The notes under the pieces were generated by a model, which was not told the DNA's origin, did not search any database, and worked only from the letters and a program-made list of their open reading frames with translations. Below, piece by piece: positions 22,801 to 63,430 of a DNA stretch of 64,000 bases. The stretch's first letter is position 1; each line of letters begins with the position of its first letter. Source of the stretch: Schizochytrium sp. TIO01 (Eukaryota; Protista; Bigyra: Labyrinthulomycetes); the NCBI GenBank assembly GCA_004764695.1, contig SMSO01000032.1, positions 8,979,230 to 9,043,229 on the forward strand. The letters run 5' to 3'. A program made the translations under genes and the position numbers.

Positions 22801-23980
22801 TGCCACCGAATCACTTGAACACGGTAGAGGCCCAAAAGTGCCGGTCTTTCGCCCTGAACGAACCATAGAGAAAGTGCCGGCACGGGGTAAAGTGGCAGGT
22901 TGGGGCCGCTTTGGCTTGGGGAAATGCAAGGTTTCACTAGCTAGGTGAACAGTAGCCTGTGACTGCGAGTGAGGGCGTTAGAGTGGAGATGCAGAGCAGC
23001 ATGGTACTGGGCCCAAAGTATCACCGTTGAGCATTCATTGTATCGCGCCAGCCTGGTCGGGGGAGGGGCTAAAGTTCCTCTCGCTCATTTGTTTTCAGCT
23101 GGTAGAGGGGTACGCGCGAAACTGGCAGCTTAAAAATTGGGAAAGATACGCCATGAGGAAAACTTGTTTTTGAAGCAGGGCTGACAGCAAAAAAGAGCTT
23201 GCAAGTCTCGCTTTATCGGAGCGCTAGAATAACGTAAGTGCCATTGATAAGTTGGGTGGTTTATTGCAATCTACCCTCAACTGCCGACGTTCGAACAATG
23301 ATTCTAGTTACATTAAAAGGAGCAAAACACGATACATGGGCTTCATAGAAATAATCCAACATCCGCTTTGGTGCCGATCACAAGCACCCCTAATACTATT
23401 TTTTGTTCTCAAAAACATGAATGTGCCTGCAACTGAGCAAAATCTTAAAATCTTTAACACTAGGTATGACTTACACCAGCCCTTTTGTAACGGCAACAGG
23501 AAATGCCAAAGCCCAGATGATATAAATCCTCGCACTGGATTACGACTAGCTCTTTCATCACGCCAAGGACATTGCAATGTGTTTTACCCGAACCTTTGTT
23601 TCCGACGGATCTTCCAATACTGACTACTCAGTGTACCCTACGAAATACAGCAGTACCTTAAGACGGATGTACAGGACCTATGCAAGCCACATTCTTCAGT
23701 GCGCATGCACAGCACTTGCTCTTTGTGAGAGCAAGTACAAAAATTACGTTACCGAATCCTATTCTAATGCATGTTTTTAGTTTTGGGCTCCTTCAGAGTG
23801 CAGCCCAACATGTTTATATATTACATCAAACGAAAATTTAAAAGTATATGAACCTTTTTTTAGGTCTTTCTTTATGTTTTACTTGATTTTGTCGTAGAAG
23901 CAAGGTTGATCATGGTTTGGAAATCAAATGGTATCAGCAAACCCGAAAAGGTATCTGATCGATTTAGCCCCACGCGAACC

Positions 23981-26900
23981 ATGAGAACCACTCAAGGATG
24001 GCATGTATTTGCCTTCGTTGCTCTTGTGACAATTTGCGCAGTGACAGCTGATCGAAATGCGGAATTCTCTGCTACAGAACATGTCTCAATGAATGACTCC
24101 AAGCATAAACTAGAGAAGTGGCGGAAGCTAGATTCTTATCCCTCTGATTTGTGCAGCTGTAGCAGTGCTACAATAAAAGTAAGATGCGATGATAATCTTC
24201 AGTTTCGGCAGTACGAAATGACAAACGGTGTTTACACCGAAATACCTAGCGACCGCAGTGGTACTTGGGATTATCAAGATTGGACGACCACGTATACCAA
24301 AACGATCGAACTCTCTGGGCAGACGCATCTGGAGTTTGAATGTCAAGATTCTGGCGACACAGGAGGATTTGTAGCCGAAATCGAAGCATGTGGTTATACT
24401 TACATAACAGATCGAAGTGTTGTTTTTGACAGTAACCCAGATCCATATGGGTGGTTCATTAACCCTGAAAAGTCTGATAGTAGCTCTACAGCAGGACTTG
24501 TCTACACGCAAATGGGAACTGGCGTTTGGGGGACTCGGGGTTCTGGCCTCACAAACACAGACGCATACTGGGTCTGGAATGGCAAAACCTACAACACAAT
24601 CACCTTTGGATTCAATCTGGAATGTCCTAACCAGGAATGTACCAGCGCGACTATCGAGGCACGCTGTGATGATAACCTGCGCTTTCGGCAGTATGAGCTT
24701 TCAAGCGATGGACTGTTCGTAGAGCAGTCGAGTGATCGTACAGGAGAGTGGGATAGCACCAGTTGGATTACTACATACGTCAAAACAATCGGCATTACAT
24801 CAAACACCCATCTTGAGTTCGAGTGCAATGATAATGGATCTGTTGGAGGTTTTGTTGCTCTTATCAATGCATGTGGCAAACGATATGTTACAAGCCAGGC
24901 AACAATCTCGAATGCTAACCCGAATACCCTGGAGTGGTACATTATTCCTTCACTCACAGATGAATCCACTAACGCTCTGGTCTACACCCAGAATGGTGAA
25001 GGTGAGTGGAGCTTAGCTGATAATGTACTCACAGACTCTGATACATACTGGGTATGGAACGGTGAGCTCTTTAACACAATGACGTTTGGTTTCGACTTTG
25101 GTCGTGCACGTCAATTTACACCCGCGCCAACATTTTCCCCGACCCCAGAGCCGACTCCAAGACCAACACGCTTTCCGACGCGAAGACCAACTCCAGCTCC
25201 TACCGTTTGTACCAGTGCGACTATTGAGGCACGCTGCGATGATAACCTGCGCTTTCGACAATACGAGCTTTCAAGCGACGGCTTGTTCGTAGAGCAACCA
25301 AGTAATCGTACAGGAGAGTGGGATAGCACCAGTTGGATTACTACATACGTCAAAACCATCGACATTACTCCAAACACACATCTTGAGTTCGAGTGCAAAG
25401 ACAATGGATCTGTTGGAGGTTTTGTTGCCCTAATCAATGCATGTGGTAAACGTTATGTTACAAGCTCTGCAACAGCGTCGAGTTCTAACCCTAACTCCCT
25501 GGAGTGGTACATTATCCCTTCGCTCACAGATGAATCCACTAACGCTCTCGTCTACACCCAGAATGGTGAAGGTGAGTGGAGCTTAGCGGACGATGTACTC
25601 ACAGACTCTGATACATACTGGGTATGGAACGGTGAGCTCTTTAACACAATGACGTTTGGTTTCGACTTTGGTCGTACACGTCAGTTTACACCTGCGCCAA
25701 CGCTTTCCCCGACCCCAGAGCCAACTGTGGCCCCTACCGTTTGCACCAGTGCGACTATTGAGGCACGCTGCGATGACGATATGCGCTTTCGGCAGTATGA
25801 GCTTTCTGACGATGGCCTGTTTGTAGAACAACCAAGTGACCGTACAGGAGAGTGGGACGACTCCGACTGGACTACTACATATGTCAAAACAATCGACATT
25901 ACTCCAAACACACATCTTGAGTTTGAATGCCAAGATAGGGGATCTGTTGGAGGATTCATTGCTCTTATCAACGTTTGTGGTAGACGTTATGTTACAAGCT
26001 CTGCAACAGTGTCGAGTTCTAACCCGAACTCCCTGGAGTGGTACATTATCCCTTCACTCACAGATGAATCCACTAACGCTCTCGTCTACACCCAGAATGG
26101 TGAAGGTGAGTGGAGCTTAGCGGATGATGTACTCACAGACTCTGATACATACTGGGTATGGAACGGTGAGCTCTTTAACACAATGACGTTTGGTTTCGAC
26201 TTTGGTCGTACACGTCAGTTTACACCTGCGCCAACGCTTTCCCCGACCCCAGAGCCAACTGTGGCCCCTACCGTTTGCACCAGTGCGACTATTGAGGCAC
26301 GCTGCGATGACGATATGCGCTTTCGGCAGTATGAGCTTTCTGACGATGGCCTGTTTGTAGAACAACCAAGTGACCGTACAGGAGAGTGGGACGACTCCGA
26401 CTGGACTACTACATATGTCAAAACAATCGACATTACTCCAAACACACATCTTGAGTTTGAATGCCAAGATAGGGGATCTGTTGGAGGATTCATTGCTCTT
26501 ATCAACGTTTGTGGTAGACGTTATGTTACAAGCTCTGCAACAGTGTCGAGTTCTAACCCGAACTCCCTGGAGTGGTACATTATCCCTTCACTCACAGATG
26601 AATCCACTAACGCTCTCGTCTACACCCAGAATGGTGATGGTGAGTGGAGCTTAGCGGATGATGTACTCACAGACTCTGATACATACTGGGTATGGAACGG
26701 TGAGCTCTTTAACACAATGACGTTTGGTTTCGACTTTGGTCGTACACGTCAGTTTACACCTGCGCCAACACTTTCCCCAACTCCAGAGCCTACCCCAGAG
26801 CCTACCCCAGAGCCTACCCCAGAGCCTACTTTAGCACCAACACATGATCCTACGAGAGCTCCGACAGACAAACCAACAGATTCTCCTACTCAAGAGCCAA

Positions 26901-28096
26901 CTGCAGCTCCTACATTTTGTACCAGTGCGACTATCGAGGCACGCTGTGATGACGATATGCGTTTTCGACAATACGAGCTTTCTGACGATGGCCTTTTTGT
27001 TGAGTTGCCGAGTAACCGTACAGGCGAGTGGGATAGCTCCGAATGGCCGATTGCCTACGTCAAGACAATTGACCTAACACCAAACACGCATCTTGAGTTT
27101 GAATGCCAAGAAGCTCGGGGCTCTGTTGGAGGTTTCATTGCTTTGATCGACGCATGTGGCACGCGATATGTTACGAACAACGCAACTGTGTTGGATTCCA
27201 ACCCAGATTCTCTGCAGTGGTACATTATCCCTTCACTCACAGATGAATCCACTAACGCTCTCGTCTACACCCAGAATGGTGATGGTGATTGGACCTCAAT
27301 GGATGATGTACTCACAGACTCTGATGCATACTGGGTATGGAACGGTGAGCTCAACAACACGATGACGTTCAGCTTCGACTTTGGTCGTGCACGTCAGTTT
27401 ACACCTGCGCCAACACCTTTGCCAACTCCAGAGCCTACCCCAGAGCCTACCCCAGAGCCTACTTTAGCACCAACACATGATCCTACGAGAGCTCCGACAG
27501 ACAAACCAACAGATTCTCCTACTCAAGAGCCAACTGCAGCTCCTACATTTTGTACCAGTGCGACTATCGAGGCACGCTGTGATGACGATATGCGTTTTCG
27601 ACAATACGAGCTTTCTGACGATGGCCTTTTTGTTGAGTTGCCGAGTAACCGTACAGGCGAGTGGGATAGCTCCGAATGGCCGATTGCCTACGTCAAGACA
27701 ATTGACCTAACACCAAACACGCATCTTGAGTTTGAATGCCAAGAAGCTCGGGGCTCTGTTGGAGGTTTCATTGCTTTGATCGACGCATGTGGCACGCGAT
27801 ATGTTACGAACAACGCAACTGTGTTGGATTCCAACCCAGATTCTCTGCAGTGGTACATTATCCCTTCACTCACAGATGAATCCACTAACGCTCTCGTCTA
27901 CACCCAGAATGGTGATGGTGATTGGACCTCAATGGATGATGTACTCACAGACTCTGATGCATACTGGGTATGGAACGGTGAGCTCAACAACACGATGACG
28001 TTTGGTTTCGACTTTGGTCGTGCACGTCAATTTACATCTGGGCCAACGACATCCCCTACTGTCATGCGCCGCGCGCTGCGGAGTGTACAGGTTTAA
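23981..28096 (+). CDS. Secreted protein with 7 tandem ~160-aa lectin-like beta-sandwich domains (ADEL/CBM67-like pattern) and Pro/Thr linkers
   Basis: Signal peptide MRTTQGWHVFAFVALVTICAVTA. Seven repeats of CxSATIxxRCDD...LEFECxDxGxxGGFxA...YxT...W...QxGxGxW...DxYWVWNG. PTPEPT linkers; no TM anchor. Repeat periods of 534 bp and 633 bp. Confidence 0.88.
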   Translation: MRTTQGWHVFAFVALVTICAVTADRNAEFSATEHVSMNDSKHKLEKWRKLDSYPSDLCSCSSATIKVRCDDNLQFRQYEMTNGVYTEIPSDRSGTWDYQDWTTTYTKTIELSGQTHLEFECQDSGDTGGFVAEIEACGYTYITDRSVVFDSNPDPYGWFINPEKSDSSSTAGLVYTQMGTGVWGTRGSGLTNTDAYWVWNGKTYNTITFGFNLECPNQECTSATIEARCDDNLRFRQYELSSDGLFVEQSSDRTGEWDSTSWITTYVKTIGITSNTHLEFECNDNGSVGGFVALINACGKRYVTSQATISNANPNTLEWYIIPSLTDESTNALVYTQNGEGEWSLADNVLTDSDTYWVWNGELFNTMTFGFDFGRARQFTPAPTFSPTPEPTPRPTRFPTRRPTPAPTVCTSATIEARCDDNLRFRQYELSSDGLFVEQPSNRTGEWDSTSWITTYVKTIDITPNTHLEFECKDNGSVGGFVALINACGKRYVTSSATASSSNPNSLEWYIIPSLTDESTNALVYTQNGEGEWSLADDVLTDSDTYWVWNGELFNTMTFGFDFGRTRQFTPAPTLSPTPEPTVAPTVCTSATIEARCDDDMRFRQYELSDDGLFVEQPSDRTGEWDDSDWTTTYVKTIDITPNTHLEFECQDRGSVGGFIALINVCGRRYVTSSATVSSSNPNSLEWYIIPSLTDESTNALVYTQNGEGEWSLADDVLTDSDTYWVWNGELFNTMTFGFDFGRTRQFTPAPTLSPTPEPTVAPTVCTSATIEARCDDDMRFRQYELSDDGLFVEQPSDRTGEWDDSDWTTTYVKTIDITPNTHLEFECQDRGSVGGFIALINVCGRRYVTSSATVSSSNPNSLEWYIIPSLTDESTNALVYTQNGDGEWSLADDVLTDSDTYWVWNGELFNTMTFGFDFGRTRQFTPAPTLSPTPEPTPEPTPEPTPEPTLAPTHDPTRAPTDKPTDSPTQEPTAAPTFCTSATIEARCDDDMRFRQYELSDDGLFVELPSNRTGEWDSSEWPIAYVKTIDLTPNTHLEFECQEARGSVGGFIALIDACGTRYVTNNATVLDSNPDSLQWYIIPSLTDESTNALVYTQNGDGDWTSMDDVLTDSDAYWVWNGELNNTMTFSFDFGRARQFTPAPTPLPTPEPTPEPTPEPTLAPTHDPTRAPTDKPTDSPTQEPTAAPTFCTSATIEARCDDDMRFRQYELSDDGLFVELPSNRTGEWDSSEWPIAYVKTIDLTPNTHLEFECQEARGSVGGFIALIDACGTRYVTNNATVLDSNPDSLQWYIIPSLTDESTNALVYTQNGDGDWTSMDDVLTDSDAYWVWNGELNNTMTFGFDFGRARQFTSGPTTSPTVMRRALRSVQV

Positions 28097-33040: not shown

Positions 33041-36000
33041 ATGGCGAAACAGCGAAAAGCCCTGTCCTCTGTTCTTGCCCTTGCAGCTCTCCTTTGCCTG
33101 ACCATACCCAAGTCCTTGGCAGCAAGCTGCACTGTGACCTCTACAACAACTGCGCCAGCATATCCTAGTGACTCTGGCTTCGACACGTCCAAACTTATTA
33201 GTATCGCAAAAGCTACAGAAGTTGTTCAGCTTCGAGTGACACCAAATTCCCCTCCGGATGGCTGGAACTCACGTACGAGCTGCCCTTTTGATGAAGACGC
33301 TGATGAACTCCTACCTTGGGAAGATGTATCAACATGGGGCTCAGCTGTCCCGGCAGACGGTGAAGACGTAACCTTACCCGAAAACTCACGGGTGCTCATC
33401 AGTGGCTGCTCAGTCTCTGCCGATACAGTTTATGGGCTCATCACAATTCCTGCAACTTCGGAACTTGTGTTCGCAGATGAAGACATTATGCTCAACACTA
33501 CTGGCATCAGTGTTGATGGCAAGCTTGTACTAGGCTCTGAAACATGCCGATTGCATAGTGATATCTCCATCACTTTGCATGGGTCCAGGCCGTCCTCATT
33601 TCCAGTCTCGCCGCACTATAAAGGCATCACTGCTCAGGGCAATGGTGTGCTTGATGTACACGGCTCTATCTTTCATCCCACCTGGTCCCGGCTTGCTACT
33701 ACAGCCTCCGCCAGTGACACACAAATCTACTTGCAACACAAGGTCAACTGGCAAGCTGGCCAACAAATCGTTGTAGTAGCGACTGAACTTAAGGATTCGA
33801 GAGACTGGCACCATAACGAGGTTCGTACGATCTCGAAGGTAGAGATTAGTGGGAAATTCTCCCGTATTACGGTTACCGAGGCATTGAATTACACCCACTA
33901 TGGAGGATCGGAGTACCAAGCCGAAGTTGGCCTGCTCTCGCACAATATCATCATCCAGGGTGATATTACTTCTGAGGGCACTGATTCAGATGATGATATT
34001 TGCTACAACAGCGAGTATGGTAGCTACCCTTGCATTGATAAGCATCTTACAGGTTACGGTGGGCACACGCTCGGTAATGGAACAAATGCGACCGTGCGAT
34101 TCGAAGGTGTAGAGCTGTATCGCATGGGTCAAACAAACGTGTTGGCCCGGTATCCATTCCACTTTCACCACATGGGTGAAGGTGGTGTAGACTCGTACCT
34201 GAAGCACTCAAGTATGCATCACACTTTCTACCGGTGTGCAACGATTCATGGGACAAATCACTCTTTGATTTCAGATAACGTTGCGTATGATGCGATTGGT
34301 CATTGTTTTTATAGTGGTGAGGACGGCGTAGAAGAGAACAACACTCTCGCGTACAATCTTGCTGCGCATGTTCATTTTCTTGGCTATCCTCAGAGAAGTG
34401 GCAACCAATACATGAATACGGTAATACAAAACTCTACGTTAACACAACCTGCAGATTTAACAGCTAGCCCCTTTTACATTACACGTGCATACAATCGCTA
34501 CTACGGCAATGCTGCTTCCGGAGGATATTCGGGCTTTGCTATAGTACGGATGCCCGCCCCTATCATGGATTACCGGGATTGGGACTTTCCAAAAGGAGGT
34601 TTACCTGAAAATCGACCATTCTTGGAGTTTGATGGAAATACGTGTCATTCTTCTGGATTTTGGTGGAATTCAGCAGCTTGTATTTATGTGGGTGGACTGC
34701 TAACACATGTTAATAGTTCGAGTTCTCTTTTGCAATATAATCCAGGCCGGACTACATCAAGCCGAAATACCGTGTGTGACCTTGGAGATGACGCTTACTC
34801 ATGCCCACTTGCGATGAATAATACGAAGGTATTTCTAAGCAACTGGGGTGTAACCAACTGGGGAAAACGAGGAACCTTTAATTCAATGGAGGTTCACGAT
34901 ACTACACGCCCAGTAGGTGTTCTTGGTGAGCACTTTTTGAACAATATCCTTTTTGTCTGCCGCTCTGGAAACTTCGAACCCGTTCAATCTGGAACAGACA
35001 AGTACTCCAAACGCTGGTTCTACTCGAGTTATGTTGGATATGAAACCTATGATGTAGATCAACGTCATATTATTGATGGCATAATCATGCGGAAATGTGG
35101 CAACCCGGAAAGGGACTCGCCAATTTGGCGCTTTGCGACGCATTCTGATCAATATGTACCAGGTTTTCAAGAGGTCATAAATGATGTTACATATGACCAG
35201 TGTAACAAAACAGTTCTCTTTAGTGAGACAGTCTCCGCTTACCTCTCTGTTAGCGGATACCTTGCAAATCTGTTAGATGCGGATGGATCTTTGAGTGGTG
35301 ATGGAAATGGCCCTCGCATTGTTGGTTCAGGTCGTGAAGGCATTGAATTCTGGGAGCTTGACGATAATTGCACATTGATAAATGACTATTACTCTTGCGA
35401 CGCCATTTCTCCAATTACAGGAAAGAAGAGAGGCATTGCTAGTTTCACAGTTCAATTCGATCCTACATTGGTAGAACAATTTTCAGAGGTCAGTATATGC
35501 AGTAATGGAGCGTACAAGTCCATTGACTGCCCTCGGGTAGGATCGGTAATGCGAATTGGCCAAGAAGGAGAGCCTAGTGAAGTTGGCCTTCCAATTGAAG
35601 GTAACGCAGTTATCTCGGGTGCCACTGGCGGATTTGGCTTTCTCCTTCTCTTTGATTCGGGTAGTCCTGTTGAGGCTGTGTTTCTCAAAGCTCAAATTGA
35701 TGAAGACGATCTTCTTATCATTGCCATGCCATACCCGGCAGGTTCAGTGTTTAATATGACCTATCGGTCTGCTTATTGGTGCTATCAATGGCATTCGCTC
35801 GACTACTGCGAGCATAATTTTTCGTCCGCTGCTTCACTCCAGGCAGTTATCAATGGCAACGGAGATCTCTACTACTTTGATACTAGTCGTGGGTTGTTAT
35901 TCTTCCGTTACGTACAACAGAGTCCTCATAGAGCTGATTATTCAGAGTCTCCAGCATATGGACAGCTTGGGCTGTCATATTATGAGCGAGCTGGATTTCG

Positions 36001-36382
36001 CATTCCTCCCGCTACAACTTTTGGAAATCTTACTCTAACAGTTGACTGCACTCTGAACGAGACAGATACAAACTATTGTCAGTTGTCCAAACACCATATC
36101 GATGGAATTTGCGAAGACTATGGATTTAGCTCTGATAGCTCAATCGTTGCCTATGATTCCTGTCAAAGCTCTAGATCTTCATCAAGTGTAGCCACTGAGA
36201 GCACAGGTTCTGCTCAAACTCTATATATTGCTATTCCAGTTGCAGTTGTTTGTGCTCTCACCATGTTAGCAGCCGTGGCCGTATTTATGATCATTCGTAG
36301 GAAGAGGCAACTTCATCGAAGTCAATCCGGAAGCGTTGTTATCAAACAAGGCAATGTTGTAGACAAGCCAGATTATTCATAA
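33041..36382 (+). CDS. G8-domain plus beta-helix type-I membrane protein (CEMIP/TMEM2/fibrocystin-like family), 1113 aa
   Basis: Signal peptide; G8 start W...TWGSAVPADGEDVTLP; TWSRLATTA; AEVGLLSHNIIIQG; GVELYRMGQ..LARYPFHFH; IHGT; GHCFY..EDGVEENN; C-terminal TM segment followed by RRKR. Confidence 0.93.
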   Translation: MAKQRKALSSVLALAALLCLTIPKSLAASCTVTSTTTAPAYPSDSGFDTSKLISIAKATEVVQLRVTPNSPPDGWNSRTSCPFDEDADELLPWEDVSTWGSAVPADGEDVTLPENSRVLISGCSVSADTVYGLITIPATSELVFADEDIMLNTTGISVDGKLVLGSETCRLHSDISITLHGSRPSSFPVSPHYKGITAQGNGVLDVHGSIFHPTWSRLATTASASDTQIYLQHKVNWQAGQQIVVVATELKDSRDWHHNEVRTISKVEISGKFSRITVTEALNYTHYGGSEYQAEVGLLSHNIIIQGDITSEGTDSDDDICYNSEYGSYPCIDKHLTGYGGHTLGNGTNATVRFEGVELYRMGQTNVLARYPFHFHHMGEGGVDSYLKHSSMHHTFYRCATIHGTNHSLISDNVAYDAIGHCFYSGEDGVEENNTLAYNLAAHVHFLGYPQRSGNQYMNTVIQNSTLTQPADLTASPFYITRAYNRYYGNAASGGYSGFAIVRMPAPIMDYRDWDFPKGGLPENRPFLEFDGNTCHSSGFWWNSAACIYVGGLLTHVNSSSSLLQYNPGRTTSSRNTVCDLGDDAYSCPLAMNNTKVFLSNWGVTNWGKRGTFNSMEVHDTTRPVGVLGEHFLNNILFVCRSGNFEPVQSGTDKYSKRWFYSSYVGYETYDVDQRHIIDGIIMRKCGNPERDSPIWRFATHSDQYVPGFQEVINDVTYDQCNKTVLFSETVSAYLSVSGYLANLLDADGSLSGDGNGPRIVGSGREGIEFWELDDNCTLINDYYSCDAISPITGKKRGIASFTVQFDPTLVEQFSEVSICSNGAYKSIDCPRVGSVMRIGQEGEPSEVGLPIEGNAVISGATGGFGFLLLFDSGSPVEAVFLKAQIDEDDLLIIAMPYPAGSVFNMTYRSAYWCYQWHSLDYCEHNFSSAASLQAVINGNGDLYYFDTSRGLLFFRYVQQSPHRADYSESPAYGQLGLSYYERAGFRIPPATTFGNLTLTVDCTLNETDTNYCQLSKHHIDGICEDYGFSSDSSIVAYDSCQSSRSSSSVATESTGSAQTLYIAIPVAVVCALTMLAAVAVFMIIRRKRQLHRSQSGSVVIKQGNVVDKPDYS

Positions 36383-38475: not shown

Positions 38476-39384
38476 AAAATGCATAGGAAATAAGTATTCC
38501 GAGGGAATTTATCTCATGGTGATCGCGCGTTCGAAGTACCGAGTCTTAATAATACCCTATCCACTATCTAGAGGTACCTATCTCTCAATACCTATCTCTA
38601 CTTACTTCGCTAATCATGAAATCTTCTTTTAGTTATTAGGCACCCATACGCGTTACTTAACTTTATCTTAATTTTTAAACCCACGTCAGACCCGCCCACC
38701 CTACTATTCCTATCTAATGAAAAACGTTCATAAAGTTGAAAAATAAAAGCTTGCAATCATTTCCTTGCTTTCTTTCGGACTATATCCTCTTTATATATCG
38801 CTATTCCAGTCACATTGTTTATTCAACATGGTAGGTACTCTTACTCTTGGTCTGTTAGTGAGAAAGTTACTCAAAGAAACTCTAATGAATGCTAAAAGCA
38901 ATAGAACTATTCGAACAACACTCTCAACTGAAACTCAAAGTACTATGTGAAGTGTATATGCTAACGAACTGAGTGAACACGCACATTTTTTTTTTGGGGG
39001 GGGGGCAAGGTGAAACTAATAATGAGTTGAGAAAAGGTTTCGATCTGTGCCAAGCCTAATTTAAAAGTAAGCCTCAACGGATATATTTGAGGCGCTTTGA
39101 TTTTTAGAGTAAAAGAGCCTTTTAGTTTTCAATAGTACCTATATCTACTTCGTCCCTAAACGAGAACTGTACTTGTCTAGAACGTGAGTACGCAAATACG
39201 GAAAAAACCTTGTAGACCTTACCATTGACCTGCAGCTTCGAGTGCAGCAGGTCTTAAACGCTCTGTGAAGACTGACCGTGTTCATCGATTTAGCTGAAGA
39301 CTGCAGCGTAAGCTCGTCAAGCAGTGATTCATTGCTCGAGTGGCTTTCAGGTGCTGACCGCATCACAGTACTACAGACTTCAAG

Positions 39385-42300
39385 ATGTCAGATCATCCAA
39401 GGGTCGTGTATGCGCTTAACGAGCTTCAGAAAGGCGCTACAGAATTAAAGTAAGTTCATGTATTACCTTCTCTGTTTGCGTAACACAATGAAATCCTGAA
39501 AGCCAACCTAGATCACTCACGTCCATGCATGTGTGCATACATCTAATGCAATATAATGTATTGCTTGCCATCATTCAATCAACTCGACAGTCTTTCAAGG
39601 AGTAATATCGGCTCAGAGGGCGCCAAGGCAGTGGCTACGGCGCTGAAAGAGAACCGTTCGCTGACATCACTTGAGTAAGTTGTCTAAGCAGTAGCTCGTG
39701 GACTTGTTCGTACATGGTGCTTGCTTCGTTGTTTGGTGGGTGGTTTTGGTCGGTGTTGTTTTGCAAGTTTATGCAATCCGTTGTTTGTTTGTTTCTTTGA
39801 TGGATGGATGGATAAGTTGTCTGTTTTAGTGAGTATACATCCATCGAACAAAGAGCAAAATGACAACGCAACAAAGATAAATCCTGAAAGCCAACCTAGT
39901 TCACTCACGGCCATGCATGCATGCGTGCGTGCATCTATTGTAATATGTAACGTGTAATGTATTGCTTGCCATCATTCAATCAAATCAACAGTCTTCAAGA
40001 CAACCGCATCGGTTTTGAGGGCGCCAAGGCAGTGGCTGCGGCGCTGAAAGAAAACCGGTCGCTCACATCACTTGAGTAAGTTGTCTACGCAACACCGCAA
40101 CTCGTGGACTTGTTTGTACATGATGCTTGGTTTGTTGTTTGGTGGGTGGGTCGGTGTTGTTTTTCAAGTTTATGCAATCGCTTGTTTGCTTGATGGACGG
40201 ATGGGTTGTCTGTTTGAGTGAATATACATCCATCGAACAAGGAGCAAAATGACAACACAACAAAGATAAATGCTGAAAGTCAACCTAGATCACTCACGTC
40301 CATGCATGTATGTGTGCATCTATTGTAATATGTAACGTGTAATGTATTGCTTGCCATCATTCAATCAAATCGACAGTCTTGGAAGCAATCGCATCGGCGA
40401 CGAGGGCGCCAAGGCAGTGGCTGCGGTGCTGAAAGAGAACCGGTTGCTGACATCACTTGAGTAAGTTGTCTACGCAACAACGCAACTCGTGGACTTGTTT
40501 GTACATGATGCTTGGTTTGTTGTTTGGTGGGTGGGTCGGTGTTGTTTTTCAAGTTTATGCAATCGCTTGTTTGCTTGATGGATGGATGAGTTGTCTGTTT
40601 GAGTGAGTATACATCCATCGCACAAAGAGCAAAATGACAACACAACAAAGATAAATCCTGAAAGTCAACCTAGATTACTCACGTCCATGCATGCATGCGT
40701 GCATCTATTGTAATATGTAACGTGTAATGTATTGCTTGCCATCATTCAATCAAATCGACAGTCTTGGAGGCAACAAAATCAGCGACGAGGGCGCCAAGGC
40801 AGTGGCTGCGGTGCTGAAAGAGAACCGGTCGCTGACATCACTCAAGTAAGTTGTCTACGCAACACCATAGCTCGTGGACTTGTTTGTACATGATGCTTGG
40901 TTTGTTGTTTGGTGGGTGGGTCGGTGTTGTTTTGCAAGTTTATGCAATCGCTTGTTTGTTGATGGATGGATGAGTTATCTGTTTGAGTGAGTATACATCC
41001 ATCGAACAAAGAGCAAAATGACAACACAACAAAGATAAATGCTGAAAGCCAACCTAGATCACTCACGTCCATGCATGTATCCAATGTAATGCATTGCAAT
41101 GTAATGTATTGCTTGCCATCATTCAATCAAATCGACAGTCTTAGAAGCAACGATATCGGCTCAGAGGGCGCCAAGGCAGTGGCTGCGGTGCTGAAAGAGA
41201 ACCGGTCGCTGACATCACTCAAGTAAGTTATCTACGCAACACCATAGCTCGTGGACTTGTTTGTACATGATGCTTGGTTTGTTGTTTGGTGGGTGGGTCG
41301 GTGTTGTTTTGCAAGTTTATGCAATCGCTTGTTTGTTGATGGATGGATGAGTTATCTGTTTGAGTGAGTATACATCCATCGAACAAAGAGCAAAATGACA
41401 ACACAACAAAGATGAAATCCTGAAAGCCAACCTAGATCACTCACGTCTATGCATGCATGCGTGCATCTACTGTAATATGTAACGTGTAATGTATTGCTTG
41501 CCATCATTCAATCAAATCGACAGTCTTTTCGACAACTATATCGACTCAGAGGGCGCCAAGGCAGTGGGTGCGGCGCTGAAAGAGAACCGGTCGCTGACAT
41601 CACTTGAGTAAGTTGTCCACGCAACACCGCAGCTCGTGGACTTGTTTGTACATGATGCTTGGTTTGTTGTTTGGTGGGTGGGTCGGTGTTGTTTTGCAAG
41701 TTTATGCATTCGCTTGTTTGTTTGATGGATGGATGATTTATCTGTTTGAGGGAGTATACATTTATCAAACAAAGAGCAAAATGACAACACAACAAAGCTA
41801 AATCCTGAAAGCCAACCTAGATCACTCACGTCCATGCATGCATGCGTGCGTGCATTTATTGTAATATGTAACGTGTAATGTATTGCTTGCCATCATTCAA
41901 TCAAATCGACAGTCTTTCCTACAACTATATCGGCTTTGAGGGCGCCAGGGCAGTGGCTGCGGCTCTGAAAGAGAACCGGTCGCTGACATCACTCAAGTAA
42001 GTTGTCCACGCAACACCGCAGCTCGTGGACTTGTTTGTACATGATGCTTGGTTTGTTGTTTGGTGGGTGGGTCGGTGTTGTTTTGCAAGTTTATTTATGC
42101 AATCGCTTGTTTGTTTGATGGATGGATAAGTTGTCTGTTTGAGTGAGTACACATCCATCGAACAAAGAGCAAAATGACAACACAACAACGATAAATCCTG
42201 AAAGTCAACCTAGATTACTCACGTCCATGCATGCATGCGTGCATCTATTGTAATATGTAACGTGTAATGTATTGCTTGCCATCATTCAATCAAATCGACA

Positions 42301-45300
42301 GTCTTGTTCGCAACCATATCGGCTCAGAGGGCGCCATGGCAGTGGGTGCGGCGCTGAAAGAGAACCGGTCGCTGACATCACTTGAGTAAGTTGCCTACGC
42401 AACACCGCAGCTCGTGGACTTGTTTGTACATGATGCTTGGTTTGTTGTTTGGTGGGTGGGTCGGTGTTGTTTTGCAAGTTTATTTATGCAATCGCCTGTT
42501 TGTTTGATGGATGGATGGATGGATGGATGGATGGATGGATGGATGGATGGATGGATGGATGGATGGATGGATGGATGGATGGATGGATGGCTAAGTTGTC
42601 TTTTTGAGTGAGTATACATCCATCGAACAAAGAGCAAAATGACAACACAACAAAGATAAATGCTGAAAGGCAACCTAGATCACTCACGACCATGCATGCA
42701 TGCGTGCATCTATTGTAATATGTAACGTGTAATATATTGCTTGCCATCATTCAATCAAATCGACAGTCTTGGAAGCAATCGCATCGGCGACGAGGGCGCC
42801 AAGGCAGTGGCTGCGGCGCTGAAAGAGAACCGGTCGCTGACATCACTCAAGTAAGTTGTCTACGCAACACCGCAGCTGGTGGACTTGTTTGTACATGATG
42901 CTTGGTTTGTTGTTTGGTTGGTGGGTCGGTGCTGGTTTGCAAGTTTATGCAATCTCTTGTTTGTTTGATGGATGGATGGATGGATGGATGGATGAATGGA
43001 TGGCTAAGTTGTCTGTTTGAGTGAGTATACATCCATCGAAGAAAGAGCAAAATGACAACACAACAAAGATAAATGCTGAAAGTCAACCTAGATTACTCAC
43101 GTCCATGCATGCATGCGTGCATCTATTGTAATATGTAACGTGTAATGTATTGCTTGCCATCATTCAATCAAATCGACAGTCTTTTGTACAACGATATCGG
43201 CGACGAGGGCGCCAAGGCAGTGGCTGCGGTGCTGAAAGAGAACCGGTCGCTGACATCACTTGTGTAAGTTGTCTACGCAACACCGCAGCTCGTGGACTTG
43301 TTTGTACATAATGGTTAATTTGTTGTTTGGTGGGTTGGTCGGTGTTGTTTTGCAAGTTTATGCAATCGCTTGCTTGTTTGATGGATGGATGAGTTGTCTG
43401 TTTCAGTGAGTATACATCCATCGAACAAAGAGCAAAATGACAACACAACAAAGATAAATCCTGAAAGCCAACCTAGATCACTCACGTCCATGCATGCGTG
43501 CGTGCTTCTATTGTAATATGTAACGTGTAATGTATTGCTTGCCATCATTCAATCAAATCGACAGTCTTCAAGACAACGATATCGGCTCAGAGGGCGCTAA
43601 GGCAGTGGCTGCGGCGCTGAAAGAGAACCGGTCGCTGACATCACTCAAGTAAGTTGTCTACGCAACACCGCAGCTGGTGGACTTGTTTGTACATGATGCT
43701 TGGTTTGTTGTTTGGTGGGTGGGTCGGTGTTGTTTTGCAAGTTTATGCAATCGCTTGTTTGTTTGATGGATGGATGGGTTGTCTGTTTGAGTGAGTACAC
43801 ATCCGTCGAACAAAGAGCAAAATGACAACACAACAAAGATAAATGCTGAAAGCCAACCTAGATCACTCACGTCCATGCATGCATGCGTGCATCTATTGTA
43901 ATGTGTAACGTGTAATGTATTGCTTGCCATCATTCAATCAAATCCACAGTCTTTTCGACAACGATATCGGCGACGAGGGCGCCACGGCGGTGGCTGCGGC
44001 GCTGAAAGTGAACCGGTCGCTGACATCACTCAAGTAAGTTGTCTACGCAACACCGCAGCTCGTGGACTTGTTTGTACATGATGCTTGGTTTGTTGTTTGG
44101 TGGGTGGGTCGATGTTGTTTTGCAAGTTTATGCAATCGCTTGTTTGTTTGATAGATGGATGGGTTGTCTGTTTGGGTGAGTATACATCCATCGAACAAAG
44201 AGCAAAATGACAACACAACAAAGATAAATGCTGAAAGCCAACCTAGATCACTCACGTCCATGCATGTATCCAATGTAATGCATTGCAATGTAATGTATTG
44301 CTTGCCATCATTCAATCAAATCGACAGTCTTAGAAGCAACGATATCGGCTCAGAGGGCGCCAAGGCAGTGGCTGCGGCGCTGAAAGAGAACCGGTCGCTG
44401 ACATCACTCAAGTAAGTTGTCTACGCAACACCGCAGCTCGTGGACTTGTTTGTACATGATGCTTGGTTTGTTGTTTGGTGGGTGGGTCGGTGTTGTTTTG
44501 CAAGTTTATGCAATCGCTTGTTTGTTTGATGGATGGATGAGTTGTCTGTTTGAGTGAGTATACATCCATCGAACAATGAGCAAAATGACAACACAACAAA
44601 GATAAATGCTGAAAGTCAACCTAAATCACTCACGTCCATGCATGTATCCAATGTAATGCATTGCAATGTAATGTATTGCTTGCCATCATTCAATCAAATC
44701 GACAGTCTTAGAAGCAACTATATTGGCTCAGAGGGCGCCAAAGCAGTGGCTGCGGCGCTGAAAGAGAACCGGTCGCTGACATCACTATCGTAAGTTGTCT
44801 ACGCAACACCGCAGCTGGTGGACTTGTTTGTACACGAGGCTTGGTTAGTTGGTTGGTTCGTTGCTTCGTGGGTTGTCTAGTGTGTTATTTTGCCGATGTT
44901 TTTCTTCGCGCCATTGCAAGTTTGTTGTGGAATTGTTTGTTTGGTTGATTGTGGATTTAAAAAAGTGCACGATAGTATCAGCGACTAAATGAAACTGTAC
45001 TGGCAATACTGTGGGTGCCTTTTGATGACGTGAAATTGTTAACTGACGAACGGAGTTGATGTCATTTGGTTTTTACTGATCCTTAGAATGTCCGATGGGT
45101 TGACGGATGAAATGTACAAGGAGCGCCAGTTTAATAAAGAAATTTATTCTGCAAAGGCAAGAAGGAAAATGCTTGAACAGATATCTCGTGAGCTTCGTTG
45201 TATACATGTTATAAACAATGTATTTAGTCTGCCGTTTTCAGTGAAGCGTAGTCTTCTTACACAAGCTTGGCCTGCTAACAGCTCTGGTGAGCTGAGTTCG

Positions 45301-45423
45301 AAAGAGGACTATCTTGCTGCCCAGAAAGTAGAGCTTGATTTGCTGGAAGCTGCAAACGTTGCCTTTCGTGGAGCATTGGGATGTCTAGGCCCTTATATTT
45401 TGAATAAAAATAGTTCTAAATAG
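39385..45423 (+). CDS. 16-exon ribonuclease-inhibitor/NLRC3-type LRR protein (525 aa): short N-cap, 14 x 28-aa LRRs each on its own 84-nt exon, and a ~112-aa C-terminal domain
   Basis: Exon 1 is 39385-39449 ([22 protein letters not shown]; CAAGATG start, GTAAGT donor). The 84-nt LRR exons start at 39591, 39992, 40377, 40762, 41139, 41524, 41913, 42302, 42767, 43180, 43565, 43950, 44328 and 44706, all with CAG acceptors, GTAAGT donors and phase 2. The last exon is 45087-45423 (TACTGAT branch site, TTAG acceptor). Total 1578 nt, in frame with no stops. Consensus [27 protein letters not shown][D/N]. Confidence 0.92.
39491..44835 (+). repeat. Tandem array of 14 exon+intron cassettes (period 377-465 bp, mode 385)
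   Basis: Start-to-start periods are 401, 385, 385, 377, 385, 389, 389, 465, 413, 385, 385, 378, 378. Introns are near-identical, and length differences come mostly from a GATG microsatellite. Confidence 0.97.
42506..42590. repeat. (GATG)~21 microsatellite expansion inside an LRR-array intron
   Basis: Directly visible; other introns carry about 2-9 copies at the same site. Confidence 0.95.
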
Positions 45424-58075: not shown

Positions 58076-61000
58076 CTCACAAGGGACAATATTTCATTAA
58101 CCACTAAAGATACTAATCATCAGGTGGTACCGTTGGAAAGCTGTTAAGATTTACAATAGGCGAGATGTGTTTTCTCAGGCGAAATATGTTTAAAATTTAT
58201 TTTTATTGACTTTGAATGTTATTTCTTGGTCTCTCATATTATTAATAGGGGGAGGGAACAAGTTTAGTAGTGTTGTAACTCTATGCATATAATAGACAGA
58301 ACTTTGCTACAAACACCGTCGGATAGCTGAATAATAGTTAAAGTGGGTGCATTTGATTTATGAGAGAAAATCTTCTTGCAAGCCTGAGAAAAGAAGCTCT
58401 AAGTTGGCACTCTATTTGTGAGCAGCAAAATGATTAGTATAAGGTTCAATTTCTCAACAACGGGGAAAGATATTACTCATCAGGTGGTGCCGTTGGAAAG
58501 CAGCTTTAATTGGCAACAGGGTACATGTGTTTTCTCAGGCGAAATCTTTTTAAAATTTATTTTTACTGACCTTTGAAAGTTATTTCTTAGTCGCCCATAT
58601 CATTAATAGGGAGAAAGAACTGAGTTTAGTAGTGCTCTAACTCTATGAATAGAATAGAAAGAACTTTGCTATAGGCACCTCTTAGTAGAACACGAATTGC
58701 TGAGATGCCCGAATTTGATTTATGAGAGAAAAGCTTCTTGCAAGCTTGAGAAAAGAAGCTCTAAGTTACTACTCTGTTTATTGGCAGGACAGAGAATTAA
58801 TGGTTAGTATAAGATTCATTTTCTTAACAACGGGATAATATATTAATTATTGAAGTGTACCATTGGAAAGCTGGTTGAATTTGCAACAGATTGAATGTGT
58901 TTTCTCAGAAAAAATACTTTAAACATGCATTTTACGGACCTTTAAAAGTTATTTTTTTTTGTCTCTCATGTTATTAATAGGGGGAAGGAACTGGGTTAGT
59001 AGTGTTGTATCTCTATAAATACAATCGACAGAGCTTTTCTACAAACATCATTCGATAGTTTATGAAGTGTTAAGATGAGTGGATTTAATTTATGAGAAAA
59101 AATGTTCTTGCAAGCTTGAGAAAAGAAGCTCTAAGTTGTCACTCTATTTGATAACAAAAGAAATAAATAAATGATTAGTATAAGATGCATTCTCTCAACA
59201 ATGGGGAAAGATATTAATCATGGAGTGATACTGTTGGAAAGCTGTTAAGAACTACAACAGGTTAGATGTGTTTTCTCAGAAAAAATACTTTAAACATATA
59301 GTTTTACTGACCTTTGAAAGTTTATTTTTGGTCTCTCATATTATTAATAGGGGGAAGGAACCGAATTTAGTAGTGTTCTAACTCTATGAGTAGAATAAAT
59401 AGAACTTTTCTACAAACACAATTCGATAGCTCAAGAATTGTTGAGATGGCCGCGTTTGATTTATGAGAGAAAAGCTTCTTGCAAGCTTGAGAAAAGAAGC
59501 TCTAAGTTGTCACTCTATTTGATAACAAAAGAAAGAATAAAATGATTAGTATAAGATTCATTTTCTCAACAACGGGGAAATATATAAATCATGGACTGGT
59601 ACCATTGGAAAGCGGCTTGAAATTGCAACAGGTTAGATGTGTTTTCTCAGAAAAAATACTTTAAACATATAGTTTTACTGACCTTTGAAAGTTTATTTTT
59701 GGTCTCTCATATTATTAATAGGGGGAAGGAACCGAATTTAGTAGTGTTCTAACTCTATGAGTAGAATAAATAGAACTTTTCTACAAACACAATTCGATAG
59801 CTCAAGAATTGTTGAGATGGCCGCGTTTGATTTATGAGAGAAAAGCTTCTTGCAAGCTTGAGAAAAGAAGCTCTAAGTTGTCACTCTATTTGATAACAAA
59901 AGAAAGAATAAAATGATTAGTATAAGATTCATTTTCTCAACAACGGGGAAATATATAAATCATGGACTGGTACCATTGGAAAGCGGCTTGAAATTGCAAC
60001 AGGTTAGATGTGTTTTCTCAGAAAAAATACTTTAAACATATAGTTTTACTGACCTTTGAAAGTTTATTTTTGGTCTCTCATATTATTAATAGGGGGAAGG
60101 AACCGAATTTAGTAGTGTTCTAACTCTATGAGTAGAATAAATAGAACTTTTCTACAAACACAATTCGATAGCTCAAGAATTGTTGAGATGGCCGCGTTTG
60201 ATTTATGAGAGAAAAGCTTCTTGCAAGCTTGAGAAAAGAAGCTCTAAGTTGTCACTCTATTTGATAACAAAAGAAAGAATAAAATGATTAGTATAAGATG
60301 CATTTTCTCAATAATGAAGCAATTTATTAATCATGGAGTGATACCATTGGAAAGCTGCTTGAAATTACAACAGGGTAGATGTGATTTCTCAGAAAAAATA
60401 CTTTAAACATATAGTTTTACTGACCTTTGAAAGTTTGTTTTTTGTCTCTCATATTATTAATAGGGGGAAGGAACCGAGTTTAGTAGTGTTTTAACTCTAT
60501 GAGTAGAGTAAGCAGAACTTTTCTAGAAGAATCATTCGATAGCGCATGAATTGTTGAGATGGTAGCATTTGATTTATGAGAGAAAACCTTTTATCAAGTT
60601 TGAGAAAAAAAGCTCTAAGTTGTTACTCTATTTGATAACAAAAGAAATAAATAAATGATTAGTATAAGATGCATTTTCTCAATAATGAAGCAATACATTA
60701 ATCATGGAGTGGTACCGCTGGAAAGCTATTTAAATTTACAACAGGGTAAATGTGTTTGCTCAGGTGAAATATTCTTAAACATATAGTTTTACTGACCTTT
60801 GAAAGTTTATTTTTGGTCTCTTATATTATTAATAGGGGAAGGAACTGAGTTTAGTGACAAGCGATAGCGAAGGTTGGTGACAACAAAGATCGGTTTAAAC
60901 TTTAAGGCTTGTTGCTCTGCAACTTAGTTTCGGGTCTGCTGCCTTCGAAGACTTTCTGCTTCGATTTTGCAGCATATAACTCGGACTCCTAGTGTTTACG

Positions 61001-63430
61001 CAATGTATTCACTAGTGCCTCGGACTTCTATTGTTTACCCAATGTAAACATTAGCAGCCATTTTCTTTTCCCTCTCTCTGAGAGAAACTGGTCGGCTTTT
61101 GGAAGAAGACTCCTAGCCAGAGTCTTAGTCCAAGTACAAGCCGTCCCGCGTTGATCAACAAGTCGAACGCCATCTGTCGTTCTTCCCGTGGCCAGCGAAT
61201 CAACCGTCCGTCGTTCACCTCAGGTCCCCCCTCTACTTAAGAGGGGACCTGAACTTTCTGAGGCACACGGCTCACCAGCACCTCTTGCGTCAGACGTTTG
61301 CGCAGTGCCTCACTAGCCAGTCCAACAGTCGACCAGGTACTCAACTTACCTGCCGACTCTCTGACTGGCTCTCGTGGCACGGAACCGGGTAACGGGACAG
61401 CAGCCCCGCAGGGACGTTCCTCTCTGTGCTCCGACATTTAGTAGTGTTCTAACTCTATGAGAAAAGTAAATAGAACTTTTATAGAAGAATCAATCGATAG
61501 CAAATTCATTGCTGAGATGCCCGCATTTGATTTATGATTGAAAATATTTTTGCAAGCTTGCGAAACGAAGCTCCAAGTTGTTACTCTATTTATTGGCAGG
61601 ATAAAGGGTAAATTGAATAGTATAAGATTCAATATCTCAACAATGAGATAATATATTAATCATCGAGTGGTATCATTGGAAAGATGCTTAAATTTACAAC
61701 AGGATAGGTGTGTTTTCTCCGAAACAATACTTTAAACATATAGTTTTACTGACCTTTGAAAGTTTATTTTTGATTTCTCATATTATTAATAGGGGAAAGG
61801 AACTGGGTTTGGTAGTGTTCTAACTTTATCAATAGAATCGACAGAGCTTTACTACAAGCACCATTCGATAGCTCATAAATTGTTAAGATGCGTGTATTTG
61901 ATTTACGAGAAAAACTCTTCTTGCAAGCTAGAGAAAAAAAGCTTCAAGTTGTCACTCTATTTGTGAGCAGGATAAAGAATTAAATGACCAGTATAAACTA
62001 CATTTTCTTATCAACGGGGAAAGATATTAATCATGGAATGGTACCGTTGGAAAGCTGTTTTAATTTACATTAGGGAAAATGCCTTGATTTAGAAAATGAA
62101 ATAACGATTATGTTTTTACTAACCTTTAAAAGATATTTTTTGGTCTCTTATACTATTAATATAAAAACAGAACTGAGTTTAGAAGTGTTGTAACTCTATG
62201 AAAAGAATGAACAAAACTTTTCTCCAAGCATCACCAGGTAGTGCAATGAGTGTTGATACGTCCGCATTTGAGTTATGAGAAAACTTCTTCTTGCAAGCTT
62301 CAGAATAAAGCTCCAAGTTGTTACTCTATTTGTTAATAGAACAAGGAATAAAATGATTAGTATAAGACTCATTTTCTCAACAACAAGGATAGATATTAAT
62401 CATGGAGTGGTACCGTTGGAAAGCTGTTTCAATTTACATTAGGGTAAATGTCTTGATTTAGAAAAATAAAATTATGGTTATGTTTTTACTGACCTTTGAA
62501 ATTTATTTTTTGGTCTTTCATATTAATAATAGGGGGAAGTAACCGAGTTTAGTAGTGTTCTAACTTTATCAATGTAATAGCCAGAGCATTACTACAAGCA
62601 CAATTCGATAATTCATGAACTGTTAAGGTGCCTGCATTTGATTTAGGATAAAAAATATTCTTGCAAGATTGAGAAAAAAACATCAAACTTTCACTCTATT
62701 TGTTAGCAGGATATATAACAACATGTTTAGTACAAGATCAATTTTCTCAACAACAGGGTCATATATTAATCATCGAATGGTACCCTTGGAAAGAAGCGCC
62801 AATTTGCAACAGGTAAGATGCGTTTGCTAAGAGAAATAAAAATTTTATTTATGTTTTTACTGACTTTCAAAAGTTATTTCTTAGTTTTTCATATTAATAT
62901 TAAGGAGAAGGAACCGAGTTTAGTAGTGTTTTAACGCAATCAAAAACGTAGGTAGAAGTTTTCCACAAGAACCACTCGGTCGCTCGTTCATGGCTAAGAT
63001 GGACACATTTGATTGATGAGAGGAAATCTTCTTGCAAGCTACAGGGAACAGGTCTTAGTTATCACTCTAATTGATAGCAGGCTATAGAATTAAATGGTTA
63101 GCATAAGATTCATTTCCTCAACAAATGAGTCACCTATTAATCATCGAATAGTACTATCGGAAAGCTGCTGAAATGTACGACAGGAAACCTATCTTGATTA
63201 AGAAAACTTAGAATTCTATTCAAGTTTTTATTGACTTTGAAAGTTATTTCTTAGTTTCTCATACTAAGAACGAGAAAAGGAAAACTTTGAAGTGTCATAA
63301 CTCTATCAATGAAATAGGTAGAACTTTTCTACAAGCACCACTAGAACGCTTCACAATTCATCGACGATCAACATTGAATTGTGGTGAAAAAATAGTTCTA
63401 CAAATTAGACAAAGGACTTCCATCATATTA
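58076..63430. repeat. Subtelomeric tandem repeat family 3, ~371 bp x ~13
   Basis: Marker GGAAAG (in GGTACCATTGGAAAG-like context) at ~58135, 58495, 58865, 59236, 59607, 59978, 60349, 60720, 61678, 62049, 62418, 62788, 63159. Central units are nearly identical and flanking units are diverged. Confidence 0.96.
60855..61436. mobile_element. 582-bp GC-richer TG...CA insertion with 5-bp TSD (solo-LTR-like)
   Basis: Interrupts a 371-bp unit at GAG-TTTAG-TAGTG. TTTAG is duplicated at 60850-60854 and 61437-61441. Starts TGACAAG and ends CCGACA. Unit spacing increases by ~587 bp (582+5). Confidence 0.85.

Follow-up and report, generated by a model that had tools for sequence, protein, structure and literature searches.

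We describe a gene of 16 predicted exons for a leucine-rich repeat (LRR) protein at positions 39385-45423 (+) of a 64,000-nucleotide stretch of the Schizochytrium sp. TIO01 genome (hereafter the window), lying beside the ribosomal DNA (rDNA) of a complete chromosome end. The locus is probably an intact gene for a cytosolic LRR binding protein of the ribonuclease inhibitor (RI) type whose exons and introns are exchanged as cassettes between chromosome ends under diversifying selection. Judged by unit length and position its repeat array corresponds to the LORE-TEARS Group 0 spacer published for Aurantiochytrium limacinum, and the gene is one of a family of approximately 100 which share its tail and lie beside the subtelomeric rDNA of an A. 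limacinum-like thraustochytrid.

The gene has 16 exons, of which the first carries the ATG, the last measures 337 nt and the 14 between them are each exactly 84 nt long. Its predicted product of approximately 525 residues comprises a short N-terminal cap, 14 RI-type LRRs and a helical tail of 111 residues. The ATG at 39385, which an earlier note made from the letters of the window had already given as the start, opens a 65-nt exon with a GTAAGT donor in matching phase and encodes a degenerate half-repeat (the cap) ending in a strand-like T-E-L-K ahead of the first variable head. A pattern scan of positions 39000-46000 found CAG before and GTAAGT after each of the 84-nt exons, and in all 14 the frame is open from the second base onwards. 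The first base of an LRR exon belongs to a codon split by the intron, the other two bases of which end the preceding exon (GA/T, AA/T or GT/T, giving D, N or V), and therefore every intron is in phase 2 and every LRR exon is symmetric (phase 2-2). Downstream of an acceptor TTAG at 45086 there follow 111 open codons and a stop at 45421-45423. The earlier note had proposed an intact spliced open reading frame (ORF) of 16 exons and this is what we find, with the frame open through all 16, canonical splice sites retained at 15 of 15 introns and exons of constant length set among cassette introns which vary from 293 to 381 nt through insertions and deletions, (GATG)n expansions included. The 14 variable heads likewise read exactly as it had written them.

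Tandem Repeats Finder recovers the array as a 385-bp unit with approximately 90% matches. Constancy of the coding part extends beyond this gene: of 134 distinct cassettes in fetched loci, sampled by anchoring on intron ends and hence independently of frame, 132 have exactly 84 nt and are open. The remaining two measure 85 nt from acceptor to donor with the extra base in or near a run of G; either these exons are truly frameshifted or the base is a homopolymer error of the long-read assembly. Among the introns of the gene, (GATG)n microsatellites occupy positions 42506-42590 (21 copies, intron 8) and 42967-43003 (9 copies, intron 9) of the window and the G-run motif GGTGGGTGGGTCGG is found on the coding strand of every intron; these are possible sites of recombination or G-quadruplex formation.

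Variation between the repeats is concentrated in very few codons. Nucleotide diversity within the gene is 0.574 at codons 2, 3, 5 and 8 of the head (LxxNxIGxE) in comparison with 0.058 for the introns and 0.071 for the exon outside these codons, and the junction codon (D/N/V), split across the intron, is moderately variable too. Using the Nei-Gojobori method the nonsynonymous (dN) and synonymous (dS) divergence of the four variable codons are 1.11 and 1.01, both saturated, and those of the other 23 codons 0.041 and 0.124. The proposal that binding-face codons differ more than the introns do is thereby borne out, these codons being some 10 times more diverse than introns and interleaved synonymous sites, with a dN of 1.1 set against a dS of 0.12 and a dN of 0.04 elsewhere in the exon. 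The pattern recurs across 174 distinct exons from many chromosome ends, in which the variable codons have a diversity of 0.58 at codon positions 1 and 2 and of 0.53 at position 3, compared with 0.077 for third positions of the interleaved conserved codons (L1, N4, I6, G7, E9) and 0.11-0.16 for the flanking 40 nt of intron. Positions 2, 3 and 5 each have an entropy of more than 3 bits and position 8 one of 1.8 bits, with values below 1 bit at the remaining positions. Of 176 heads 138 are distinct, and S, G, Y, R, D, N and W are abundant in them.

As the excess is codon-specific and the silent sites interleaved with it are quiet, the variation of the heads requires selection at the level of amino acids and does not reflect a mutational hot patch. 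With dN/dS of approximately 1 and saturated at the variable codons, positive selection is argued from how far these codons exceed the silent sites next to them and not from omega within the codons themselves. The same quiet synonymous sites led us to reject hypermutation of the whole patch, and relaxed constraint was rejected since adjacent silent sites are about 7 times less diverse. Structured introns, or introns bearing non-coding RNA, were also considered as a reason for intron conservation and rejected, there being no consistent structure (two introns fold with z = -1.96 and +0.09).

A search of the 64 Mb genome (37 contigs) gave at least 389 matches to one cassette. The tail exon was matched 104 times, with an open frame over the full length in about 60 cases. 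The DNA of the 5' region is by contrast unique in the genome, its non-self matches being confined to query positions 389-491, which belong to the shared intron 3' end. Of the sister genes, the one on contig C18 was read over its whole length. Its exon 1 is again 65 nt in the same phase and encodes a similar peptide (MSD.P.VV.AL..LQ.GAT.L), and none of its 12 heads is identical to any head in this gene. Exon 1 and the DNA upstream of it are 75% and 76% identical between the two genes, the last intron 91%, the tail exon 99.4% and the following 1 kb towards the rDNA 97.6%, a gradient from which it follows that the gene straddles the border between chromosome-specific DNA and a homogenised block on the rDNA side.

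Introns are 94-99% identical genome-wide, and in a partial sample the closest relative of 10 of the 13 introns was found at another chromosome end, with identity of up to 99.0%. Introns which are 96-99% identical between ends are flanked by exons with unrelated heads, and the reshuffling of cassettes that had been suspected is visible in just this way. Within the gene the differences of heads and of their flanks are only weakly correlated (rho 0.20, p 0.11). A recent duplication accounts for exons 5 and 13, whose heads are identical and whose flanks are nearly so, and exons 3 and 9 carry the same head on diverged flanks. Such a pattern is what concerted evolution, acting within loci and between them, leaves behind when combined with diversifying selection.

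Coordinates also place arrays of the same cassette directly upstream, in the same orientation, of open frames of 854-867 residues matching Roc and TIR_2 on contigs C35, C30 and C32 (Table 1). On C35 a second array follows the Roc/TIR_2 frame and ends in a tail exon at 2654514-2654846. Some arrays and tail exons are situated deep inside multi-megabase contigs (C30:5479274-5483807 (+), C30:5516579-5521112 (-) and C31:3164094-3168642); a number of these deep arrays form mirror-image pairs and some score identically to copies on the small contigs C5 and C19, which points to joined chromosome ends or assembly redundancy.

Domain and sequence searches were made exon by exon, and the fold was modelled on a natural paralogue (P0008, 267 residues, with six RI-type repeats and a tail of the same family) using AlphaFold2 with a small alignment. 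Single LRR exons match Pfam LRR_6 with E-values of 1.8e-4 to 6.4e-3, one repeat alone scoring below the LRR_6 whole-protein cut-off of 23.4 bits, and a single exon matches RI-like LRR proteins in the PDB, NOD2 and RI among them, with E-values down to 5.8e-12 by way of many repeats. The P0008 model, with a predicted local distance difference test score (pLDDT) of 78 and a predicted template modelling score of 0.69, displays regular five-residue strands and 13-residue helices (E5-loop-H13), and Foldseek finds it similar to the LRR domains of tropomodulin, NLRP1, NOD2 and RI (E 1e-9 to 1e-6). The best matches of sequence and fold also include leiomodin and axonemal LRR proteins. The RI-like LRR class has repeats of 28-29 residues with the pattern LxxLxLxxN/CxL...G...L in a strand-loop-helix solenoid, and the 28-residue repeats of this gene and the units seen in the paralogue model belong to it.

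On transfer of the motif to the P0008 model the junction codon and position 2 are exposed on the strand S-L-x-L-x, the loop between strand and helix takes in positions 3 and 5, and the helix begins with position 8. The variable positions had been expected to line or flank the concave LRR surface, and in the model they do so at the strand end, the beta-to-alpha loop and the helix start, which would make them the concave face and its ascending rim. We take these positions to coincide with the hot-spot residues through which RI binds RNases.

Additional domains of the kind found in known LRR receptors are lacking in this gene. Pfam returned nothing in exon 1 or in the tail, and thus no NACHT/NB-ARC nucleoside triphosphatase (NTPase) of the type that defines NOD-like receptors (NLRs), and there is no further open frame within the span from the ATG exon to the stop or from the stop to the 18S gene. 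A Roc domain after the LRRs, as in ROCO proteins, was not found in this gene, which ends in its 111-residue tail; Pfam detects no death or signalling domain in it, and its N-terminus is without a hydrophobic stretch. The absence of NACHT and ROC domains and of a signal peptide had been anticipated from the letters of the window.

The tail itself is lineage-specific. It has no Pfam family, and a profile built from 17 tails retrieved 3 clusters only among 1.84 billion representative proteins, all of them from MMETSP transcriptomes or JGI data. Alone it models as three helices (pLDDT 69), for which there was no Foldseek match in the PDB at E<=0.001 and no usable match in the ESM Atlas. The generic helical hairpins returned by a wide VIA search (Z<=6.5, below the tool's chance level for helical models) were set aside as a guide to the fold, and so was the MLA10 coiled-coil as a relative of the tail (Z 6.3, not meaningful).

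In order to look at transcription one 6,000-letter stretch was compared with the contigs of four sequencing runs, three of them RNA-like (X15, X16 and X19) and one of DNA (X2); depth is not comparable between bins of the runs and the order of the array is not readable from contigs. Many contigs of the RNA-like runs leave the gene at the exact exon ends 40075, 40845, 41607, 42385, 42850, 44411 and 44789, and beyond the joint they continue with TCTT and a head absent from this gene followed by the constant part of the exon. Such joints are exon-exon junctions of paralogues with the intron removed, and the DNA run contained no exon-exon contigs. In one X19 contig an LRR exon runs directly into the tail exon at its first base, 45087. 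The transcript ORF P0004 from MMETSP consists of an intron end, an LRR exon and the tail, its last intron having been excised exactly at the predicted site. The first 12 residues of P0004 are the translated 3' end of a cassette intron, so that the transcript contig begins in the intron before the last or retains it, whether through incomplete splicing or through a break in the assembly of the repeats. A homologue search with P0004 for more spliced transcripts yielded tail-only MMETSP ORFs. A copy of the unique 5' region in run X2, which probably comes from another strain, is 95% identical and has an intact exon 1. Splicing holds for the family, which is the level at which the evidence of the RNA-like runs and of MMETSP applies; of the splicing pattern predicted by the earlier note, the use of the predicted sites stood for the family, whereas the unique exon 1 of this locus had zero depth.

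The 18S gene begins 3.7 kb downstream of the LRR gene and the TTAGG telomere is 18 kb away, the rRNA genes identified by Rfam (49157-54684) being on the same strand. In A. limacinum MYA-1381 the "LORE-TEARS Group 0" of ~385 bp is found upstream of the telomere-proximal 18S, the usual order being 5S, Group 0, 18S with 7 of 37 ends lacking the 5S, and the 28S is separated from the TTAGG telomere by arrays of ~406 and ~366 bp (10.1101/2023.06.15.545109). The LORE-TEARS were there called spacers without GenBank similarity and proposed to act in chromosome-end maintenance, the text of the preprint being silent on LRR and on coding capacity, and mirusvirus-like elements were described in the host, one of them integrated beside rDNA/LORE-TEARS blocks (10.1101/2023.06.15.545109). 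Our array is alike in its ~385-bp tandem unit upstream of a telomere-proximal 18S and in the further arrays, then TTAGG, that follow. It differs in having 14 units where ~9 are typical in the preprint and in its placement, which is not between a 5S and the 18S; there is no 5S gene in the whole window and no Rfam match at E<=0.1 in 28000-49200, the 21 kb upstream of the 18S. A motif scan of the telomere-side 412-, 371- and 370-bp arrays found no RI-type LRR frame. Within the literature searched the term LORE-TEARS occurs in no other paper, and no paper ties Aurantiochytrium to LRR families.

The evolutionary mode seen here is already known from fungi and brown algae. In Podospora anserina the NWD/HNWD genes (het-d, het-e) undergo concerted evolution of near-identical WD repeats within and between loci, with four interaction-surface positions per repeat under diversifying selection and a pool of repeats that supplies mutations which are then reshuffled (PMC1805685). 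The present gene resembles them in its homogenised repeats, in its 4-5 selected positions per repeat and in the nearest relatives of its introns at other loci, and it combines concerted evolution with few selected surface positions as they do, the surface being that of the paralogue model. The fungal genes differ in having WD40 repeats within one exon, a STAND NTPase, a HET domain and a possible contribution of repeat-induced point mutation, whereas this gene has RI-type LRRs at one repeat per exon, an intron within the homogenised unit, a subtelomeric and rDNA-linked position and no NTPase.

The LRR-ROCO genes of Ectocarpus and other brown algae, which have been proposed as immune receptors, carry a 72-nt exon per 24-residue LRR, shuffled and alternatively spliced, with positive selection on the concave face (PMC3341825; PMC11378527). 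The parallel drawn earlier with these genes extends to one LRR per exon and to shuffling but not to the repeat class or to ROC-COR. Both systems are stramenopile and have a constant-length exon per LRR (here 14 x 84 nt in phase 2-2, with nearest introns at other ends), exon shuffling and selected concave-face sites, and the paralogous arrays here likewise precede Roc-containing open frames. Brown-algal LRRs are however of the plant-specific type with 24 residues, attached to ROC-COR and without linkage to rDNA or telomere, in contrast to the 84-nt exons, 28-residue RI-type LRRs, 94-99% identical introns and novel helical tail of this gene.

Vertebrate NLRC3/NOD LRR regions and RI share with it the 28-residue RI-type repeat and the LxxLxLxxNxIGxxG pattern, and NOD and NLRC3 genes carry one repeat per 84-nt exon. 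The differences are that NACHT is absent here and that the vertebrate repeats are not known to be homogenised with their introns or to have such a pattern of four hypervariable codons in a clonal background. The variable lymphocyte receptors (VLRs) of lamprey and hagfish are also cassette-built LRR solenoids with diversity in concave-face residues. They are assembled somatically from an incomplete germline, are secreted or anchored by glycosylphosphatidylinositol and belong to another LRR class, whereas the germline gene here is complete and open.

In the mechanism that we propose, 385-bp cassettes of exon and intron are swapped and homogenised among chromosome ends and selection on amino acids keeps four or five residues per repeat different, these residues being placed by the paralogue model at the beta-strand end, the beta-to-alpha loop and the helix start. 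The protein may then be a cytosolic binding module with a concave and ascending-loop surface tuned to variable, probably biotic ligands, the family may constitute a germline-encoded recognition repertoire and the tail, or the ROC-TIR module in paralogues, may be the output or assembly part. We infer the recognition of biotic ligands because of the selection pattern, the ROC-TIR kin and the mirusvirus-like elements of the host; an immune role is likewise putative. A number of points weigh against this reading. The unique first exon of this locus is at zero depth in X15, X16 and X19, the RNA nature of these runs is a guess and intron contigs are present in them as well. The ratio of dN to dS at the variable codons is close to 1 with both terms saturated, the structural mapping was done on P0008, whose tail is ~36% identical to that of this gene, and the tail has no fold or motif recognisable by Pfam, Foldseek, ESM Atlas or VIA.

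On another reading, to which the zero depth at exon 1 in the RNA-like runs would lend weight, the array is primarily a structural subtelomeric or rDNA spacer concerned with chromosome-end or nucleolar upkeep, its frame being incidental or that of a decaying pseudogene. The preprint describes spacer units at fixed positions relative to rDNA and telomere and proposes a maintenance role for them (10.1101/2023.06.15.545109), and the homogenised block reaches from the rDNA side across the tail and on into the array, as seen in the comparison with C18 (tail 99.4%, downstream 1 kb 97.6%, upstream 76%). We nevertheless find this very improbable, as the 84-nt frame is kept in 132 of 134 cassettes while the introns gain and lose bases, the variation is codon-specific with quiet silent sites, the splice sites of 15 of 15 introns are kept and the family has spliced transcripts; the array may have a dual role, as spacer and as coding sequence. 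A programmed source of head diversity, either targeted hypermutation or the somatic or mitotic copying of cassettes as in the lamprey VLR, with clonal lineages that differ, seems very improbable. Heads are indeed uncoupled from their flanking introns and 138 of 176 are distinct, a subtelomeric position favours ectopic recombination and exons of phase 2-2 would stay in frame after rearrangement or skipping, but the synonymous third positions within the 25-nt head patch have a diversity of 0.077, below that of the intron, the recent duplicates (exons 5 and 13) keep identical heads and the germline gene is complete, unlike the VLR locus.

More serious, although still unlikely in our view, is that the gene is real and under diversifying selection for ligands other than those of pathogens, such as in self/non-self or mating recognition among conspecific cells, comparable to fungal het genes, in the inhibition of a diversifying set of nucleases or toxins, endogenous or secreted, as by RI, or in docking to variable partners in the cytoskeleton. 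The closest mechanistic parallel, the NWD repeats of Podospora, serves allorecognition (PMC1805685), the matches include RI, tropomodulin/leiomodin and axonemal LRR proteins besides NLRs, and this gene is without a death or signalling domain; that paralogous arrays feed Roc+TIR modules typical of immune-type sensors, and that the host carries mirusvirus-like elements with one beside an rDNA/LORE-TEARS block, counts in the other direction but is not decisive. It is a long shot that the rDNA-linked subtelomeres are themselves the generator of diversity, in which case the recombination that unifies the rDNA and its flanks across ~50 ends would also shuffle LRR cassettes among ~100 genes and, with all exons symmetric, mitotic recombination or exon skipping could endow clonal lineages or single cells with different receptor sets, an adaptive-like contingency-locus immunity against mirusviruses.

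Coordinates of the locus, of the chromosome end and of the sister arrays are collected in Table 1. Elsewhere in the window we observed long ORFs without introns, compared with 15 introns in the LRR gene, encoding a full-size ABC-2/ABC_tran transporter (2236-6279), a DUF7045 protein of 1396 residues (23906-28096) and a G8/CEMIP beta-helix protein of 1113 residues with hydrophobic stretches at its N-terminal end and near its C-terminus (33041-36382).

Table 1 Features of the LRR gene, its chromosome end and sister arrays. Positions are those of the window unless a contig is named
Feature	Position	Strand	Remarks
Exon 1	39385-39449	+	65 nt; GTAAGT donor
Intron 1	39450-39590	+	141 nt; last ~100 nt are the common cassette-intron 3' end
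LRR exon 1	39591-39674	+	head LSRSNIGSE; Pfam LRR_6 E=0.0064
LRR exon 2	39992-40075	+	head LQDNRIGFE; RNA-like contig joint at 40075
LRR exon 3	40377-40460	+	head LGSNRIGDE; Pfam LRR_6 E=0.00042
LRR exon 4	40762-40845	+	head LGGNKISDE; contig joint at 40845
LRR exon 5	41139-41222	+	head LRSNDIGSE; recent duplicate of exon 13
LRR exon 6	41524-41607	+	head LFDNYIDSE; contig joints at 41607
LRR exon 7	41913-41996	+	head LSYNYIGFE
LRR exon 8	42302-42385	+	head LVRNHIGSE; contig joints at 42385
LRR exon 9	42767-42850	+	head LGSNRIGDE; contig joint at 42850
LRR exon 10	43180-43263	+	head LLYNDIGDE
LRR exon 11	43565-43648	+	head LQDNDIGSE
LRR exon 12	43950-44033	+	head LFDNDIGDE
LRR exon 13	44328-44411	+	head LRSNDIGSE; LRR_6 E=0.00018; PDB RI-like LRR chains, E down to 5.8e-12; contig joint at 44411
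LRR exon 14	44706-44789	+	head LRSNYIGSE; contig joint at 44789
Last intron	44790-45086	+	297 nt, GTAAGT..TTAG; supported by an RNA-like run X19 contig and MMETSP transcript P0004 (paralogue)
Last exon	45087-45423	+	111-residue helical tail and stop; lineage-specific; conserved terminal motif LGxLGPYI
18S	49157-50942	+	Rfam
5.8S	51027-51177	+	Rfam
28S	51332-54684	+	Rfam
412-bp array x2.8	55674-56828		between 28S and telomere
371-bp array x7.4	58106-60855		between 28S and telomere
370-bp array x4.9	61518-63340		between 28S and telomere
Telomere (TTAGG)n	63570-63997		complete chromosome end
Roc and TIR_2 matches after sister arrays	C35:2643891/2645484; C30:10754/12329; C32:41154/39531		
Array and Roc/TIR_2 frame regions	C35:2637023-2645810; C30:5777-12637; C32:39531-45221		

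Compared with the fungal and brown-algal systems, the novelty lies in the repeat class, in homogenisation that takes in the introns, in a tail specific to the lineage and, most of all, in the identity of the array with a spacer class published as non-coding and stated to be built into every rDNA-bearing chromosome end. Chromosome-end repeats published as "non-coding" can thereby be re-read as a large family of recognition-type proteins, expressed at the level of the family, which would add a third independent lineage and a new type of repeat to the fungal NWD and brown-algal ROCO genes. The physical link of the repertoire with subtelomeric rDNA points to a concrete origin of the cassette exchange. 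As Aurantiochytrium is culturable and transformable and hosts mirusvirus-like elements, the idea of an LRR immune repertoire in a protist would be directly testable.

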